Assembly (NCBI GenBank): GCA_965649765.1
Contig: OZ287751.1
Span: 30,814,001 to 30,878,000 of the forward strand
Length of the DNA stretch: 64,000 bases
Direction of reading: 5' to 3'
Source of the DNA: Bispira polyomma
Lineage: Eukaryota
Shown in pieces: positions 24,101-45,100 of the stretch (its first letter is position 1; every line of letters starts with the position of its first letter). The position numbers and the translations under genes were made by a program. The notes under the pieces were generated by a model. The model saw only the letters and a program-made list of their open reading frames with translations. It made no database searches and was not told the DNA's origin.

Positions 24101-27100
24101 TGCTGACCCAGCCTCCCTATTACAAGACATGCCTTTATTATCCCACCATGTTTGGAGGGGAAGATTTTGTGAGGACAATTCTGGAAGGTTCACAAAATAG
24201 AACAAAATAAAAGACATATTTTAGTTTTAAGAATAGAACTACATGTACTGTAAATTCAGAATAAACAATGTTCCGTACAACTTGGATCATTATAATTACT
24301 CAACGTACAATTGATGGCACAGCAAATTTGAAAAATGCTATAATGCCTCAAAAATACAGACAAAAGAAGGGGAGGGGGGGGGGTCTGTCTCTAAGGCCTA
24401 TTCTTGGCCCTCACAAAATATGAAAAAAAAAAATATTTTCATTTACATCAACTGCCAGCCAAATGACCAGGGATGGGGATATAGAATTGTATCACTATGT
24501 CAATTAGTCTGTGCCATTTGTCTCATTCTAACCAAACTCTTATGTGTTAATGGATTTTGTGAATTACCCAAAATAACATTCACCAAACCATTAAATTCAC
24601 ATATGAATACAGCAGAACCCACATAGATTTTTTAGACACAACAGTCAAATTCAATCCACAAAGAGAGCTCATCACTACCCTGTATAACAAACCCACTGAT
24701 ACACACTTGTATCGACACCACACTTCAGCACACCCAAAAACTGTTTTGGAGAAAGGTCCATATGGGCAATACCTCAGACTTAGGCGCATATGCACACTAA
24801 ATGAGGATTTCACCAGCAATGCCAAGAAACTCACTGAGTGCTACCTTGCTCGTGGTTACCCCATTAAATCCCTCAGGGGTCACTTCAGAAAGGCTAACAA
24901 ATTCACTCAAGCACAATTACTTGCAGTAAACAAAAGGGAGCAAAATGACCCTCAGTTTTAGTAACTGAATACAACCCAATAAACCCAGACATTAAAGGGC
25001 TCATTAAACATAATTGGAATATTATCCAACACACAGATGACCTAAAGAAAATATTCAATGAAAAACCTATCATTGGATTCAAGAGGCTACCTAACCTCAG
25101 AGATAAACTTACCTCTGCCAAAATTTTGTACCCTGCAGATAGCTGTGAACAGTCAATAAATGACCTCCCACCTGTCTGTACCAGATTAGGCAAGTGCACA
25201 TACTACCCCAAACTTAAGAAACTGGATCAAATCACCAGTTTTCATACAAAAAAGGTTTACAAGTGTATTAATCTCCCACCAAAACCCCGTCTCACATGTG
25301 AATTATATTACTTGATTTACATGATCAACTGTAATCAATGTGGATTACAATACATAGGGGAAACCAAGAGGCCATTTAGACAAAGGATGTATGAACACAT
25401 AAGAAGTGTTAGCAATCCTAAACTACAGTCATCCACCCCAGTGTCAAGGCATTTTAGTCAGAAACAACACTCTACTAAAAATATGGAGTTCAGTATTGTC
25501 CATTGGTTAGGTTTGGATTATAAGGCAAATAGTACAGAGCGACGCAGGCGTCAGGAACTGTACTATATATGGGCCTTACCAACCCTTACCCCTACTGGGA
25601 TTAATATATTTGTGTGATGAGGCCCTCTTACCTGGCACCCTTACCCTAGTGCCCCCTTACCCTTTATATTCTTATATTGGGCCCTTCACTCAACAGAGCT
25701 CAAACGCCTATCTAGGCTCTATTGACGTCACAACGTCACGCTGACGTAACCCACCATTTTAACGTCACGTTACGATCAGGGCATTATGACGTCACCGTCA
25801 CCAGGCAATTCACCTTACTTACCTGGATATTTTGTCTGACTACACAATACAAGCTGTATTTGAATTGCCCATATACAAGTGGCACCTTTTTTTTAAAATT
25901 ATTTTTGTGAAAAAATTTTGTGGAAGATATTTGTAAATAAACAAATTCTGAATAATGTGGTTCATTTGCCACAGCACCTTCAGCAGGAAGTCGAATTTAA
26001 AGAGACACCTCAAATGAAGACATCAGGAATATAGAATCCACTGTACACTTTGTAACAAGGCCTTCAGGAGACCTGATTACTTAAAGAGGCACACATCTCA
26101 GTGCCCAAATAGACAAACAGATGTAATGTTCAAAAACATTCTAGACTGTATTGACACATAGGATTATTCCCCAGATTTATTCTCACAGGATGACATTTTG
26201 GATTTAGCGCAACACAATTCCTCAGCTCACCACCTGATGGACTGTGTCGTTACCACAGAAACTTTCACATACTACCTGGGCCAGTAATTCAACCCAGACA
26301 GATCTGTCAATCCTACCTGATTGTAGACAGAATACACATGTGGGAGTGAATACCTCACCTGTATTTTGGAGAGAAAAGTCTACCCAGATTAGCCCTATCA
26401 GGCTTTGCTCAGCTTCTACCTCACCACATGTGTTGATGCTGGATGAACAACCTACTGATCCTGATCCTACCACAAGCTCCACTCCAGCAACACCTGGAAA
26501 GGAGTTACCTTGTTACTACACTACTGAGTACCTCAAGGAACATGACCACCTAGGACTATTCCTTCCAGATTCTGTCCAGTTTGGGGACACTCTTAATCTA
26601 GAGGATCCTATACCGTCACAGCAAACGAATTCCTTTCAGTGGGGCAACTTACCCTTGGACTCTAGTAGTAAAGAATTCAACCTATTAGAATGTCTGGAAA
26701 ACATATGCATGGATTTATAGGATAATATCTCAAACTATAGGTATTATTTTGTGTATCATACTATATCGGATGGATTACTACCGAATAATCCATTATACTA
26801 TAAGCTTCAATTATTAATTTATTAGTATTATTATCCCTAACATGGTTTAAATTATTAAAGTTAATGTCTATTTTCTTTTTAATTATATTAGTGCATATGT
26901 ATATTCATTGGTGTATTATTCACACCACCTATTTAGGTTGTTTTCCTGTTTATACTTTATTAGTATTAAACCATTATGTACATGAAATACTATTTTATCT
27001 AACCAAATCCACTGCAATCACTGTTGCCTTGGTCAGCAGTAGGCTTGATTACTGCAACTCTCTGTTCCGTTCCCTATCTTGTAGTGACCTCAAACGTCTT

Positions 27101-30100
27101 CAGAACGTTCAACACTCATTGGCTCGCATCGTGGCCAAAACTTCTAAATTTTCTCATATTACTCCTGTACTTAAGTCACTCCACTGGCTCCCAATAAAAT
27201 ATCGTGTTGCTTTCAAAATTGCAACAATTATATACAAATTTCTAAATTCTGGATCACCCACCTATTTCAGCCCCCATCTCTCCAAATATACATGCTCAGT
27301 CAGGACTAGGCGCAGTAACCCTGATAAGTAATATCTTAACATTCCCACTTTCGACCCTCGCATCCACAAATCCAAAGTACATTTCAATCATTGCCTTGCT
27401 CATGATGGCCCCTTCATATGGAACAGCCTGCCTGATCATGTTCGCTTGGCTCAAACGTTCCTCCTCTTTTAGGAGTAAACTGAAGGCCTACCTTTTTGAA
27501 CAGGCCTTTCCACCTTAGCCATCCCAACCATCCCGGTAGTCTCTCTGGTTATGACCACCATCCGTCCCCCATTTCTGATTTTTTTCATTAATGCTTAGGT
27601 TAGTTGCGCCTTAGAATTTGTTATACAAAGATTAAGCACTATAAAAGTACGATTAGATTAGATTATTTCTGTTCATTCCCTTCTGTGTCACCCTATCAAT
27701 AGTTTGGTAGTTTTATTACTTATGTAGTCAACTACCTCTAACTATAATAATAGTCCCTTCCTTTTAAGCTGATCGTTACTAATTAGGGTAACTGTGTTTC
27801 ACCCCACACCAACGGTACACACAGTAACCCATTAGCACATGTCATTGGAGCCACCCCAACTTGTGGAGGCTCCCCTACTGGTCAACCAACATTACCCCAG
27901 TTATTAATGATTTGAATTTAGTAACACCACCAGTCATCACTGGTGGAATCACCACTAGAGCCACCTCAATATGTGGAGGCTCACCACTGGTCAACCATGA
28001 CAACTTTTAAACACTCTGGTCAATCACATTTATTGTTACCTTTGTGTACTCCATTTTTTTGACAAATATCCCCAACCAGATATCATTAATTCACCCCCAA
28101 ATATTGTATTAGTGTATTCATATTCAGACACTAATAACCATATTTGAGGATTGCCTCCAAGGTGTAAATTCAGAATGCGTTTGAACGGACTGACACACAC
28201 ACACACACACATTGTGTTTATCTGTGTATAATATACCTACTTATCCTATATTTAAATAGGATTGGACCTCAAATTCACTGTCAACTGTATAGATACTGTA
28301 TTCTACTATACCATGTATGATAGGTTCAGTATTTATTCACATTTATATATTTATTATTCCACACATGAGAATAACTATTAATAATTATATGTATATATTA
28401 AATAATATATTTTTATTAATCAATTAAAAAGTTTTTTCTGGCCTCTCTATCTGATAATCATATTGGATCTGATACCAGAATCACTGCTTAATACCCAAAC
28501 ATTGAACCCAACAAAAACACATTATAATGGGTTCACCATTTATTCATTTATTCATACATTTATTTCCCCTCATAGGTGAAATTATATTTATTATTATATA
28601 TGCATAAAGATTAATATAATAGTTTGAACCACCCATTAGTTGACTCTTGGTTCTGTACACACCTGAAACCTTCCTGACCACTTATTTCAGTTAGGACAGG
28701 ATCTATTGTCTCTACAATGATTACCTTTGAGTCAGAGCCCACTTAGAGTTCTGCTCCGCCCAGTTGCTCCGCCTGATCAGGTGGAGTCAGGCGGAGTCCA
28801 TTTTTCCACCTTAAGGTAAAAAAGTTGAAATTTTTTACAGCCTCTGATGAGAAACCCACTGGAGTTCGAAATATATTTGAAACCAATAATATATAAGGCA
28901 GTCAGTTCACTCCTGTCACCTACACCAAGTTCAAATAAACTCTTATCTGATGATCATATTTTGAATGGGACTTTATTGTGTTTATAAAATGCATTATAGA
29001 AGTTTGCCACCAAACGTGAAAGCCAAGTTGACTACCGTAGTAATTTTTTGTTTTTCAAAATTTTTCACCTGTCATTTAGAGCCAAAGTACTTGAGCCAGA
29101 ATAACCCCATTTCATAATGGAGATTCCTTTAGCAAATAGGAAAAACTTTTATGACTTTCAGGTAAAATGCTTAAATGTTGAGATCACATGACCTGATTTT
29201 TCATAAAATGGTTTATAGTATATGAGCAGGAGATACAGCAATTTTTAACAAATTTTTGGCCTGCTAGGGTAGAATGGATGTAATATTGAAATTATCTTAT
29301 TTGTCCATTTGTCCAATCATGACATTTGTCTAATTATTATGGCTAAACTGTTTTGCCACAGGATGATCTTAATTTGTATGGGGCTTTATCATGATACAAT
29401 GCTAAATACAAATTTCGACAAACTCTGAAAAACAAAGATGTCTAGCATGGTGACTTTTTCAAAAAAAAGGGATGGGGGATCGTAGGTTTGTCCATTCATC
29501 CATTTGTTCGTTTGTGACATTTGATTAATTTTAGCCAAACTGTTTGATAAATGATGATCATATTTTGTATTGGGCATGATACAATTTTTGCATAATGATT
29601 TACACACTGTTGAATAATCTGATCTGTGAGATATTGGGTGGTTGTGCTCATACTGAAAGAAATAACTCTGTACCCTGTTTCAGTTGATGTTTATGTAATA
29701 ATAACTTATTAAATATACCCCACAAAATGTAAAATACAACGAAACATTCTTAAATTGTTCTATGTATAGCATCATTTTTTTTTTTTTTGTTCTGTCATGA
29801 AAATTATCTACTTCTCTCCTGCATATATGATCATTTTAATCAACATAAAAACTCCAGCATAACTAACTATATACATTACATTTTTGATGTACCCATACAT
29901 AAAGCCACCCCCAGACCCAGTCTTTTGTCTGTAGTTTAATTATTAATACAAAATGAGGTCCAATTGACTTAAAATCTCTAATCGTTGTTTCCTTTTGTGT
30001 GTGTGATAACACTAATAAACTACTGAGTCTGTATTCTTTAAAAGAAACTGTAACTTAAACTGAGGTTCAACTCATGGTAAAGGCTTATGTGAAAGTCCTT

Positions 30101-42100: not shown

Positions 42101-45100
42101 ATAACTCACTTGGACTACCAAGTAGATTAATTTCAGGTATATGAGTACTTATGTTCTGTAGCATTTCATCTCTATGAGCAGCATAAGCAGGACATTTTAT
42201 GAAATAATGTGTCACAGTTTCTGGACCATTTTTTACACACAGAGCAGCAGTCATATTCTATCAAGTTGTATGATCTACGGTGGAAGTTCAAAGCACTGAG
42301 ACCCATTCGAAGCCTACTGTGGTATACTGCAGGGTTACCTGTGTGCCACGAATTTGCTTTATTAAATTTGACTTGATAGTTTGATTTTAGCTTTCACTTA
42401 AAAATTTGAAGTGATAAGACACCTCTCAGGTCAGGGTTAAGATGGTTCCAAACTGATAGAAAGAATGATTTGTAGTTATAGTCTTTCTTACAAAGGAATT
42501 ATTAGCTGAATATACGTACTATTTCTCAGATTATATCCATGCACACCACCCTTGGGACATAACTTGTAAAGATATTCTGGAGAATAATAATTCAGAATTT
42601 TATACATTAGGACAAGTTTTTTTATCAAATGTCTGTCCTTGAGCAGTTCTAATCCAAATTCAGATAAAAGACATTTATGTTTAGTAGCTTTATAGGCCCC
42701 AGTAATTGTTAAGCAAAACTGTCGTATCGATTGACCTTATTTATTAAGAACTCATTAAAGACAATATGTTTAACATGCAATGGCTGAGCTTTAATTATTT
42801 TAACTTACACGGAGAGACTGTTACAATACTAACATTATAAAAATCTACAAGTACCAAAGTGAAAAATCCAAGGAAAATGACTTTACAACTTAACAGCTCG
42901 CAGAAACAGTAGAACCTCTGTTACACAAACATGTTCTATGAGCAAGATTTTGTTTGAATAATAGAAGGTTCGTAAAACAGAAGAGGTATTTAGTTGTAAA
43001 ATTTGAAGAGTGAAAAAAAGTTGAAAAAAATCAAATATTTTGATTACCGATGGAGACTAAGTTTACTCTACCAAGGAAGAAAACTTTGACCTACTTCCAT
43101 GACGTCACAAATGACGTTTTTGCTACTATTTATTACTTTACAAATTAAAACATGTATTAAATTTTATGTTCAAAGCACTGTACCACATAAATTTTATTCC
43201 TGTGTGCTAAGGGAGCACAATGATAATATAATATACCATTGACTGCTGACTGACAGACATGGCACTAGTAAATAGAAAGGGCAGCTGGTTGATGGACAAG
43301 GTCGTCATGGGGTTAATAGAAGTTTGGATGATAAAGGTTCTACGTACAGTAATAAATTTTATTTCTCAAAGTAAAAAAGAAACAGGCACCTGTAGAGTAT
43401 TGTGGTACCTTATTCATTCCAGTGGTTCCAGAATTTCTATCATAAAATTTTATTTATTGATATCAGTACCTTTAACCTCAATTAACTTAATTAAAAGACC
43501 AAAATTCTATAGTAATGTCTGTAATCGATGCTGTCTATCTTGTGGTCCAGTCAAATGATGAAGATAGTTTTAAAAGATTCTATTTCCTGTACATTTCTGC
43601 CCATTAGATGCCACATATATGTAAGTTCATCGAGTCATTGTATTCCAGAGTTCTCCATAGGTCGTTGAAAATCTGGAGAAAAAATGATGATGGACACGTT
43701 TAAATTTTTTTTTTAAGTCCTGTAATTTTTAAAATCTAAACAAAATTTTATGCTGTGACTACAATAAAATGCTGCGACTATGGCAAAAAGGCGTAAATTT
43801 GATACTGGTCCATGTCACTTTTCAAAATCATTTTACATATGAAAACCACATGACAAAAGGTATTGTGTGTAATGCCTGTGTGAGGGGTGATGGGAGGCCA
43901 CTAAGAAGCTCCCCAGGCTTTCTGATGGATCATTGAGGAGGCATTTAAAATCGCTGCATCACGCAAAAACATTCTATCTTTTAAGCGGAATAACAGCAAA
44001 GCTTGCATATTTGATAAAGCTACCTTTAAAGGACTTGCCACTTGCCTCTTCCCATGTAGATCTCTACTAGGGGGCTTTAAGGTCTGTCTATTCCATCACA
44101 TTAAAGGTCTCCACTGACACTACACCCTCATATTCTAATTAATTACCCACACACACTCCAGCTCTCTCACCCAAGTAGAGTGTTGTTCATTAAAATTGTA
44201 ACAGTTTAACCATTACTACGATTCTTTATGATTCTGTCGTGCTGATAATCGGGCCTCCCTAGGTTAACAAAGGTCACCAGGTAAAAGTGTACTGCTAAAC
44301 CTATATTACTGCCCACCACCCTACTGAATGACTGCTAGCATCTCCCCCAGAGGTAGAGGGTATAGAGATAAGGCAGTATAAGGCAGAGGCGATTAGATTG
44401 ATGTGTTCATCATAATAAGGGCATTCAGTATATCAAAATTAAATGCTGGAATGTGATAAGTTTATCCGATAAATGAATCCAGGTTAACAGTAGTTACTTG
44501 CCTGATATTTTGCTACTAAATATATTTTATTCCACCACAGTTAATGACTGTTTGGGGTATGATCATTCCCATTGTCAGCTGTTTAAAGGAAGGGAGAAGA
44601 TTTAGTCCAGGCTAGATATAAGAAACTACTTGTCCATGAGGAGATTCATATTTAGTACAAGTATCTCCTAGTGGGTATAGTGTGTAATGAAATGGCAAGG
44701 TCGGTCCTCATTTTGACCAATCAAATTATGACTTTCTTATGTGTCGTGTATTAAGAATGTAATAAATCAATTATACATTTTTGATGTTCCTTCAATAACC
44801 TCTTAAATAAACTGAGGTACACAGACGGTTCCTTAACTGTAAGTCTATCAATAAATTACTTTGTGTTTTGCTCACGACTTTCTTGCCATGAATTTAAACA
44901 ATGTTAAATCCATGAACATTTGTTCATTTAAACCTGTATTTACTTATATGGTGATGTTTTGTGAAATAAACAAAATGCTGAAGTAATGTTTTCATTTGTT
45001 ATCAGTGCAATAATTGAATATGACTTAATGTGATGATACAGTCATGTATTTAACACCAAATAAAGCTGGGTCTCATTTCTCATGCCATTAAAGCACAAGA

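Follow-up and report, generated by a model that had tools for sequence, protein, structure and literature searches.

A probable three-ORF Penelope-like retrotransposon family of Bispira polyomma with a conserved zinc-finger gene and two termini

We analyzed a stretch of 64,000 nucleotides from Bispira polyomma (contig OZ287751.1; the window). Positions 24543-28946 of its plus strand are a single 5'-truncated insertion of a Penelope-like element (PLE), and the copy ends at 24542/24543 and 28946. As a whole, it is best explained as the dead, 5'-truncated arm of a three-ORF Penelope-like retrotransposon, an arm that ends at the terminus designated T2; we assign this reading a probability of approximately 0.8. 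The window copy is dead, though the zinc-finger gene of its family is intact elsewhere in the genome. In this family, a conserved two-zinc-finger gene (ORF-Z) and a CRE cluster lie between the enzyme gene (RT-EN) and a hammerhead, which is a departure from the textbook single-gene PLE. The features of the window copy are as follows.

24543..25617, plus strand: 3' 1.07 kb of the RT/GIY-YIG ORF, 5'-truncated (tblastn against the frame of copy L005; Pfam)
25618..25668, plus strand: conserved short spacer up to T1 (...CCCTTACCCTTTA(TA), ~25666), an alternative insertion end
25723..25800, plus strand: CRE-like cluster, enriched over shuffles and conserved in position
25955..~26720, plus strand: decayed ORF-Z (tblastn, two frames); the intact form has 258 aa
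26996..27663, plus strand: nested ~670-675-bp high-copy repeat, LINE-tail-like and foreign to the PLE, with the TSD TATTT
27664..28837, plus strand: non-coding tail from ORF-Z to the hammerhead, with hairpin repeats, a 597-bp segment, and GC palindromes
28838..28901, plus strand: type I hammerhead motif with a complete core; helices II and III are retained in other families
28902..28946, plus strand: terminal 45 nt up to T2 (...TTCAAATAAACTCTTAT), where many copies stop

A previous sequence-only reading of this DNA regarded the co-oriented series as one PLE unit. We found its parts on the plus strand, each near its proposed position and in the order RT/GIY-YIG ORF end, CRE cluster, broken C2H2 ORF, hairpin repeats, and hammerhead, and they are contiguous or linked in other copies. 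The non-coding tail contains two hairpin-bearing 33-nt direct repeats (27843-27875 and 27953-27985), a subfamily-specific 597-bp segment (28096-28692) that is present in some copies and absent from others, and GC palindromes at 28767-28786, ahead of the hammerhead. The nested segment had been taken for an L2 fragment. The insertion is real; however, it is a unit-length, high-copy repeat of ~675 bp (more than 3400 candidate copies, 97-98% identity, fixed ends) rather than a random LINE fragment. It is younger than the PLE copy; in other PLE copies, 26995 is followed immediately by 27664.

Residues 321-664 of the L005 RT-EN frame match window positions 24572-25602 (tblastn) with one break near 24950, and the stop codon is located at 25615-25617. 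Pfam GIY-YIG was detected on 25126-25617 (E=1.8e-6), and YEH...SRH motifs are visible in the translation. The GIY-YIG domain is C-terminal with CCHH inside its core (CxxC...H..H), and a CX5CxxC linker is located upstream of it in the window and in L005. The window retains the C-terminal part of the RT only, while the L005 RT matches Pfam RVT_1 (E=1.3e-8) and has the DKG motif upstream of the RT core (DKGSAVVV). Based on published criteria (CX2-5CxxC linker, CCHH, and C-terminal EN, as opposed to Penelope/Poseidon, Hydra, and Naiad; PMC8557442), RT-EN appears to be of the Neptune/Nematis type, by motifs that do not separate Neptune from Nematis. As in other PLEs, the copies are often 5'-truncated, form partial tandems (pLTR), and lie beside inverted copies that are themselves 5'-truncated. 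However, it departs from the single ORF of canonical EN+ PLEs: ORF-N, RT-EN, and ORF-Z are separate and conserved.

The repeating unit is ~5.4-5.5 kb long (the tandem period of L026 is 5435 bp) and reads, in DNA order, ORF-N, RT/GIY-YIG ORF, T1, CRE cluster, ORF-Z (~258-288 aa), structured tail, hammerhead, T2, and the next ORF-N. Since ORF-N (~260 aa, NLS and helical) precedes RT-EN, the family has three ORFs, and the two-ORF picture drawn from the window was incorrect. ORF-N starts ~25 nt beyond T2, and the hammerhead is located ~130 nt upstream of the ORF-N ATG. Segments 25620-26995 and 27664-28946 are contiguous in other genomic copies. L012 and L026 are tandems in which T2 leads directly into ORF-N and RT-EN, and sequences continuing past T2 into the next unit were found in L002 (minus strand), L004, L012 (twice), and L016. 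Among families with ORF-Z 35-66% identical, the RT-EN stop is followed by ~340 bp, ORF-Z, 0.8-1.9 kb, the hammerhead, and ORF-N, and the same order was found in a foreign assembly (ERZ22147071). EN and ORF-Z identities co-vary over 13 loci (Pearson 0.76). We concluded that the parts are a single co-evolving unit.

The unit has two termini. T2 is located at 28946, 51 nt past the predicted hammerhead cleavage site and ~100 nt past the start of the hammerhead core, and many copies stop there against unrelated flanks. T1 follows the RT-EN stop by ~50 nt (~25666). The window copy continues across it; more than 20 independent copies stop there and are followed by unrelated DNA or (TA)n (15 of 40 scored matches stop at T1). 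K-mer depth peaks ahead of both termini. At 7/7 loci, T1-ended and T2-ended arms stand head to head and are sisters in the tree, and a single shared TSD of 11-17 bp flanks each arm pair, also at 7/7 loci; these loci were picked for long arms, so that how often T1 and T2 pair is not estimated without bias. The targets are AT-rich or (TA)n. T2/T2 inverted pairs occur for a short derivative, and no clear TSD was found at single-arm copies such as those in the window, L001, and L005. New insertions come from templates of more than unit length and are 5'-truncated, and the typical insertion consists of two inverted arms from one event, one starting at T2 and the other at T1. Because T1 arms are sister to T2 arms with one common target duplication, there are two termini, not two elements. 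The hammerhead had been proposed to mark the true 3' end. A terminus is indeed located just past it, ~3.3 kb after the GIY-YIG stop, but T1 is a second one. The sequence-only reading also named PLE copies ending right after 25620 as evidence against its single unit. Such copies exist as arms ending at ~25666; however, these arms are the sister halves of hammerhead-ended insertions.

The many RT-EN copies that stop ~50 nt past the stop codon may also be explained by a single-ORF PLE ending at T1 and a separate 'Z element' (CRE, zinc-finger ORF, and hammerhead tail), perhaps non-autonomous, that became adjacent by chance or via read-through (3' transduction). A DNA k-mer depth several-fold lower over ORF-Z than over RT-EN is consistent with this explanation, as is the mobilization by PLEs of host genes framed by pLTRs (PMC3846280). 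Nevertheless, we consider two elements to be very unlikely. The RT-EN/T1/CRE/ORF-Z junction is shared by every family and the foreign assembly, and the genes co-diverge. Long T1 arms extend back via ORF-N, T2, and the hammerhead into ORF-Z (L002 minus strand; C2:6475958-6480743), T2 arms cross T1 into RT-EN with random 5' truncation points, and the 5' region of ORF-N was never seen without the Z tail upstream. The sisterhood of T1 and T2 arms around one TSD also argues against separate elements. Another explanation is that T1 ends are secondary and arose through recombination or deletion at an AT-rich hotspot, or when the element inserted into its own older copies where ORF and pLTR meet. The sequence around T1 is AT-rich (TTTATATTCTTATATT), and AT-rich DNA is the preferred target of PLE endonucleases, which in vitro also favor the junction of their own ORF and pLTR (PMC11167929). 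However, what follows T1 is unique flanking DNA without PLE sequence, and it repeats the 11-17 bp beyond the T2 end of the partner arm, as is typical of a primary insertion end. We consider a secondary origin to be very unlikely.

The window ORF-Z is split between two reading frames with three stops and one frameshift (tblastn), and its finger 1 has lost one Cys through a 3-codon deletion. Intact ORF-Z frames (256-294 aa) were found in dozens of copies from at least 6 diverged families. They share a plan of two N-terminal C2H2 fingers followed by a conserved motif-rich tail. Intact copies have two C-x2-C-x12-H-x3-5-H/C fingers above the Pfam cut-off; intact L005 and L015 match zf-C2H2 (PF00096) in two stretches with E=1.6e-9 and 38.1 bits (cut-off 25.2). 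In AF2 models, residues 1-60 have pLDDT of 83-96 (two confident fingers) and the tail is mostly low-confidence. The sequence-only reading had postulated a second, zinc-finger gene in this PLE family. This gene is intact and conserved in other copies, and is linked to RT-EN in every family examined as well as in the foreign assembly. We found no description of such a zinc-finger gene in the literature on canonical EN+ PLEs.

A 9-sequence alignment of ORF-Z contains 51 invariant columns, some in blocks outside the fingers, and families and other organisms whose ORF-Z is only 35-45% identical still share its start (MWFTC) and C-terminal motifs. Between families, dN/dS is 0.07-0.15, with ratios of 0.03-0.15 where dN of 0.19-0.28 is set against a dS at or near saturation; these values are approximate because of this saturation. 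Within families, dN/dS is 0.2-1.4, and very young families exist (e.g., dS of 0.011 for L021 vs L026). These within-family ratios and young families would be expected if ORF-Z were a captured host zinc-finger gene carried as passive cargo and intact only through the youth of its copies, and host-gene capture by a PLE has been documented (PMC3846280). We regard this explanation as very improbable. It is at odds with the low dN against saturated dS between families and with the retention of the ORF, its start, and its C-terminal motifs at such low identity, also in other organisms. Moreover, no stand-alone cellular homologue outside a PLE context was present among the full-length matches inspected. 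At the level of sequence, these patterns show ORF-Z to be a selected gene of the element.

In the hammerhead of the window, helix I pairs 28838-43 with 28896-901, the core CUGAUGA is located at 28844-50, helix II at 28851-67, GAA at 28868-70, and helix III at 28871-94; cleavage is predicted after A28895. All core nucleotides are present at 28844-28895 (C3-A9, G12-A14, A15.1-U16.1, and H17: CUGAUGA...GAA A...U A), as in the hammerheads of the other families. In the window copy, a deletion makes helix II one nucleotide shorter than in the family, and MFE folding of this copy does not give the hammerhead structure. The core and three helices were found in most families sampled, 0.8-1.9 kb past ORF-Z; a simple core pattern detected no hammerhead after ORF-Z in L023 and L028. 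Helices II and III are kept through differing sequences in other families and in L041/L044, a compensatory change that was judged by eye from the alignment and MFE folds, in which indels shift the register. The helix II variants are GAACACC/GGAGUUC, GAUUAUC/GAUUAUC, AACUGA/UCAGAU, and GAAAU/AUUUC, and those of helix III are AUAUAUU/AAUAUAU, AUAUAUAUC/GAUAUAUAU, and AUAUUCACA/UGUGAAUAU. An Rfam search gave no hammerhead at the gathering score; the best match was RAGATH-1-hammerhead with 21 bits in L026 and 17.9 bits in the window (cut-off 56.3).

Within the CRE cluster (25723-25800), TGACGTCA occurs at 25723 and 25787, together with TGACGTAA, TAACGTCA, ACGTCA, and CGTCA. Two of the three TGACGTCA sites of the 64-kb window fall in this interval (0.36 expected), and 7 of 24 ACGTCA matches sit within 72 bp. 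Most copies of every sampled family carry the cluster at an unchanged position, as do the foreign loci L041 and L044; where it is not in place, foreign sequence is inserted upstream of ORF2. In sequence, this clustering of TGACGTCA palindromes ahead of a gene fits a CRE (cAMP-response-element) promoter. The sequence-only reading had proposed a separate promoter for the zinc-finger gene. Because ORF-Z in tandem units is as much upstream of ORF-N/RT-EN as downstream of RT-EN, the CRE cluster may instead be the general promoter of the element.

The mechanism by which canonical EN+ PLEs integrate is only starting to be understood. We propose that the RT-EN protein nicks both target strands in a staggered manner, and that reverse transcription is primed at two fixed internal RNA sites, which would extend the internal initiation observed in vitro for a Poseidon PLE. 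The CRE cluster would be the promoter in the inter-ORF spacer, the equivalent of a pLTR. The transcript may begin with ORF-Z and continue through the hammerhead into ORF-N and RT-EN, and hammerhead cleavage could part the ORF-Z message from the RT-EN message. Judging from its domain content, the ORF-Z protein may bind nucleic acid as an accessory component of the RNP, or it may act in targeting or transcription, and conserved short motifs in its disordered tail would recruit host proteins.

A tentative joint reading, which we hold to be possible rather than probable, combines integration from T1 and T2, a tail-equivalent grown into a CRE-promoter/C2H2 cassette, and an essential trans-acting role for the C2H2 protein. 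Both strands would be nicked by a complex of RT-EN that is probably dimeric; cDNA would start at two fixed internal RNA sites, T1 and T2, 2-3 kb apart, giving a two-armed insertion, and the segment between them would be the equivalent of the 30-40-bp PLE 'tail'. The C2H2 protein would act in RNP assembly, targeting, or self-transcription. T2 arms copy the cassette before the rest of the unit, so that, if this reading is true, many truncated insertions would spread CRE-driven zinc-finger genes through the genome.

Canonical C-terminal EN+ PLEs of the Neptune/Nematis type (Arkhipova 2006; Craig et al. 2021, PMC8557442) resemble the Bispira family in the DKG RT, C-terminal GIY-YIG with CxxC...H..H, CX5CxxC linker, 5' truncation, pLTR partial tandems, inverted 5' arms, (TA)n or AT-rich targets, and a hammerhead in the inter-ORF repeat. 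PLEs with the CX2-5CxxC linker are known to have tandem and inverted pLTRs and to target (TA)n (PMC8557442). However, canonical elements are described with a single ORF, whereas the Bispira family has three; 2-3.3 kb separate its RT-EN stop from the hammerhead, a spacer that holds a gene and the CRE cluster, and its termini are kilobases apart in place of a 30-40-bp 'tail'. The metazoan PLE hammerhead is minimal (PMC4209133), whereas helix III in the Bispira family is stable (7-9 bp). In the Poseidon element PAc of Anolis, reverse transcription initiates internally ~111-118 nt into the ORF, just past the HHR, and both strands are cut and extended (Frangieh et al. 2024; PMC11167929). PAc is similar in its hammerhead at the pLTR/ORF boundary, insertion ends ~100 nt downstream in the next unit (here T2), AT-rich targets, and the cutting and extension of both strands, here supported by genomic signatures. 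In contrast, the start sites of PAc are adjacent (tens of nt) and its ORF starts inside the hammerhead, whereas the two sites of the Bispira family are 2-3.3 kb apart, with T1 upstream of T2 and behind the RT-EN stop, and ORF-N starts past T2.

Chlamys-2_cBra of Chara (PMC8557442) is another PLE that has gained a small zinc-binding ORF, and its hammerhead is canonical. However, it belongs to another PLE clade in the green lineage and has an N-terminal EN, an upstream gag-like zf-CCHC knuckle ORF that is not C2H2, a 3' hammerhead, and no reported CRE cluster. EN-minus Athena/Terminon PLEs (PMC8557442, PMC6431247) are similarly multi-ORF, with an upstream coiled-coil ORF1 that corresponds to ORF-N in position, but they are telomere-bound, lack an endonuclease, and have extra ORFs unrelated to ORF-Z.

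LINE ORF1 proteins and the N-terminal C2H2 fingers of R2 provide a small nucleic-acid-binding protein or domain beside the RT for RNP formation or target recognition. We know of no sequence relationship between these and ORF-Z, which differs in being a separate gene after RT-EN in the DNA unit and in its long disordered tail.

These results call for caution in genome annotation. In such genomes, intact small zinc-finger ORFs may belong to transposons by the hundreds, and taking the first 3' end of a PLE as its boundary would cut the element in two. The two fixed termini, sister arms, and single TSD support both-strand synthesis from defined internal starts, and extend the in vitro Poseidon result to start sites kilobases apart. 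An accessory DNA/RNA-binding gene and a conserved CRE cluster have been retained in the pLTR-equivalent through deep diversification, and what a PLE needs beyond RT-EN, thus, becomes testable.

In the window, 24543-28946 (+) is one single copy of a repeat, a 5'-truncated Penelope-like element (PLE). The sequence-only reading had described the end of an RT/GIY-YIG ORF (RT-EN), a CRE cluster, a zinc-finger ORF (ORF-Z), structured repeats and a hammerhead in this region. Each of these parts was located on that strand, and the observation was confirmed because tblastn, Pfam, motif counts, repeats and the hammerhead nucleotides placed them as follows.

24572-25602 (+), part of the RT/GIY-YIG frame, tblastn match to residues 321-664 of the frame of L005 (a genomic copy), with one break near 24950
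25126-25617 (+), GIY-YIG domain (Pfam E=1.8e-6)
25615-25617 (+), stop codon of RT-EN
25723-25800 (+), CRE cluster: TGACGTCA twice, TGACGTAA, TAACGTCA and more half sites
25955-26717 (+), broken ORF-Z, split over two frames, with three stops and with a finger cysteine lost to a 3-codon deletion
26996-27663, nested insertion with a TATTT duplication
within 27843-27985 (+), two hairpin-bearing 33-nt repeats
28838-28901 (+), hammerhead with all conserved nucleotides and three helices

The window copy is dead and is ~91-92% identical to its relatives. All sequences analyzed were natural copies. An AT-rich 597-bp segment with a (CA)n run (28096-28692) is present in the window copy and one subfamily, and is missing from most fetched copies.

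A search of the organism's own genome (1.04 Gb) recovered 25620-26995 and 27664-28946 as repeats, directly contiguous in other copies; therefore, 26996-27663 is a nested insertion. This insert, which postdates the PLE copy, is a unit-length repeat of ~675 bp; its ends are fixed, and it has over 3400 candidate copies that are 97-98% identical. It has a (GATTA)n-like tail and a remnant similar to the C-terminal end of LINE ORF2, and thus probably represents a very young family, SINE-like or derived from a LINE tail. Seven copies with an exact spacing of ~9.8 kb at G000:C8:32900230-32959753 suggest a large tandem or segmental array holding this repeat.

PLE copies share the end at 28946, and their 5' truncation points are random inside RT-EN, a hallmark of target-primed reverse transcription that starts at the 28946 end. 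Common 5' boundaries at 24542 and L005:3776 were rejected as family boundaries; they are merely the ends of the query copies. Just 5' of the truncated window copy, AAACTCTTAT (24533-24542) is identical to the last 10 nt of the element (28937-28946), representing either microhomology between target and terminus or a 10-bp duplication. The single-arm copies L001 and L005 have no such match. Identities of the EN region and ORF-Z co-vary (13 loci, Pearson 0.76). The present results demonstrated the unit structure of this PLE.

ORF-Z is a real gene of the PLE. It is intact at 256-262 aa in other copies, and a protein search of the genome identified dozens of intact frames (256-294 aa), grouping at 90, 60-67, 43-45 and 38-40% identity to the query. 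The proposed linkage of an intact zinc-finger ORF to RT/GIY-YIG and the hammerhead was borne out: most of the 12 loci fetched from these groups have the RT-EN stop, ~340 bp, ORF-Z, 0.8-1.9 kb, the hammerhead and the next unit's N-terminal ORF, in that order, while a few have no RT-EN upstream or no hammerhead that could be detected. Comparisons between families gave dN of 0.19-0.28 with dS close to saturation (ratios 0.03-0.15); selection on ORF-Z was demonstrated. The protein has two C2H2 fingers (Pfam 38.1 bits, cut-off 25.2). An alignment of nine sequences contains 51 invariant columns, with some blocks beyond the fingers (QTD; H.G.N...F...K; SPH; PG; the E-P pair in an EDPLP block; and a C-terminal L...L.....D). 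Conserved motifs of the protein include TQTD(I/L), EDPLP and WGN. The conserved (S/T)(T/S)QTD(I/L) motif resembles an LC8-type anchor in sequence. In an AlphaFold2 model (23-sequence alignment), residues 1-60 form two confident fingers (pLDDT 83-96), and the tail is mostly of low confidence with three short helices.

A word-based protein search with ORF-Z returned one finger-only match, while a full HMMER profile search against 1.84 billion representative proteins identified full-length relatives at 37-40% identity (P0002, P0003, P0004, P0016 and others), all from metagenome-type assemblies. In one of these, ERZ22147071, the relatives lie 250-370 bp 3' of genes that match RVT_1, HTH_animal and GIY-YIG, on the same strand. 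The foreign loci L041 and L044 likewise retain the spacer with its conserved sequence, the CRE sites and a hammerhead, and helices II and III of their hammerheads are built from different, compensating sequences.

In the spacer that separates the RT-EN stop from the ATG of ORF-Z, two blocks are kept in most copies of every family; L017, L019 and L021 have other sequence in their place. The first block reads ...GCCCTCTTA..CACCC..AACCC....TATATTGGGC, and the second contains two to three TGACGTCA sites and TGACGTAA. The 64 kb contain three TGACGTCA sites, two of them within 25723-25800 (0.36 expected), and seven of the 24 ACGTCA matches fall in the CRE cluster, inside 72 bp. Conservation of this non-coding DNA argues for a function of the blocks, and a putative promoter is the obvious reading of the CRE-bearing spacer. 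Outside any PLE sequence, TGACGTCA with an adjoining ACGTCA half site occurs at 43100-43117 in the window, and may be a host promoter element.

The hammerhead of the window copy has a helix II one base short, and its minimum-energy fold is not a hammerhead. Rfam did not detect a hammerhead at the gathering threshold in the whole window or at E<=10 in 5.5 kb; sub-threshold RAGATH-1-hammerhead matches appeared only with tiny search windows. Indels in helix II shift the families into different registers in the alignment. In metazoan PLEs, the hammerhead usually takes a minimal form that lacks a stable helix III (PMC4209133). In contrast, helix III here has 7-9 pairs.

Two loci, L012 and L026, are head-to-tail tandems (periods of ~5490 and 5435 bp), in which the end past the hammerhead (T2) continues directly into ~1.4 kb more coding sequence and then RT-EN again. 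L026 and G000:C2:59177335-59196175 form an array in which at least four units of a younger related family are joined head to tail, with a 5.43-kb period and the same RT-EN frameshift in both units read. The ORF encoded after T2, ORF-N, is as follows.

L004:4224-5006 and homologues, ORF-N, a separate, conserved ORF upstream of the RT-EN ORF

ORF-N (~261-294 aa) begins with MSVSDTAL and has a KRRR motif and helical regions. In all families, its conserved stop lies ~150 nt or more ahead of the ATG of RT-EN itself. The gap is AT-rich, ~150 nt long and contains stops; an intron in it, splicing ORF-N to RT-EN, is possible. The real ATG of ORF-N is ~25 nt past T2. We rejected the ATG inside CUGAUGA as an ORF start in the window copy: the same frame stops after 16 codons elsewhere, and the apparent start is an artefact because the window copy has a 1-nt deletion.

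Many RT-EN copies stop ~50 nt past the RT-EN stop, at ...CCCTTACCCTTTA(TA) (T1, window ~25666), followed by unrelated DNA or (TA)n; 15 of 40 scored matches to the region have T1 ends. Copies likewise stop at T2 (...AAATAAACTCTTAT, window 28946), before unrelated DNA or (TA)n. The fetched loci carry T1-ended and T2-ended copies in head-to-head orientation. The two arms of a locus were sisters in all seven cases of a sample biased toward loci with long arms (tree of 462 bp before T1, support 86-96), and in L002, L003, L004, L007, L010, L011 and L013 the same 11-17 bp follow the T1 end and the T2 end of the partner arm. Because the head-to-head arms are sisters and share this duplication, a single insertion event yields two inverted arms, each starting at a fixed site of its own. 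According to the sequence-only reading, PLE copies ending just after 25620 would count against a composite element. Such copies exist, with their end at T1; however, they do not split the element because T1 and T2 arms arise in one event. Long T1 arms reach back via ORF-N, T2 and the hammerhead to ORF-Z (L002 minus strand; C2:6475958-6480743), and T2 arms cross T1 into RT-EN; therefore, the template is longer than one unit. In contig runs that look like DNA, k-mer depth peaks just 5' of both T1 and T2, and is lowest over ORF-Z. The analysis demonstrated two termini, sister arms, one target duplication per pair, and AT-rich and (TA)n targets.

Short derivatives containing only the PLE tail (window 28005-28946, often without 28054-28240) were noted at L048 (G000:C13:1479000-1481800), L049 (C5:67780000-67783100) and L050 (C13:19844300-19847200). 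They are T2/T2 inverted pairs flanking a 310-440-bp spacer, with an identical inner boundary at several loci, and look like a non-autonomous, retrozyme-like offshoot.

Canonical EN+ PLEs have a single ORF, terminal repeats (pLTRs), inverted 5' copies and, at one end, a 30-40-bp tail; clades having the CX2-5CxxC linker target (TA)n (Craig et al. 2021, PMC8557442). RT-EN here has the CX2-5CxxC linker, an internal CCHH and a C-terminal EN; by its motifs, it would be of the Neptune/Nematis type, not Penelope/Poseidon, Hydra or Naiad. For a Poseidon element, both target strands were shown to be cut and extended, and reverse transcription to begin at an internal site, just past the hammerhead and 111-118 nt into the ORF (Frangieh et al. 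2024, PMC11167929). T2, 100 nt past the start of CUGAUGA and 51 nt past the predicted cleavage site, is a good fit with this internal initiation. No counterpart of T1 has been described. Extra PLE ORFs include a zf-CCHC in the Chlamys element of Chara, and the domain figure of the review shows a coiled-coil ORF1 as optional; Adineta Penelope mobilised single host genes. Full-text literature searches turned up no description of a canonical EN+ PLE with a C2H2 gene.

We propose that both target strands would be nicked with a stagger and that priming would occur at two sites inside the RNA. As a spacer promoter, the CRE cluster would drive a transcript running from ORF-Z through the hammerhead and ORF-N to RT-EN, and hammerhead cleavage would separate the messages. 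ORF-Z may be a nucleic-acid-binding accessory protein with host-binding motifs. In L045 and L047 of ERZ22147071, the N-terminal part of the RT ORF has precomputed matches to Pfam DUF8422 (PF28514) and HTH_animal (PF26215), and these matches may serve as handles for PLE annotation.
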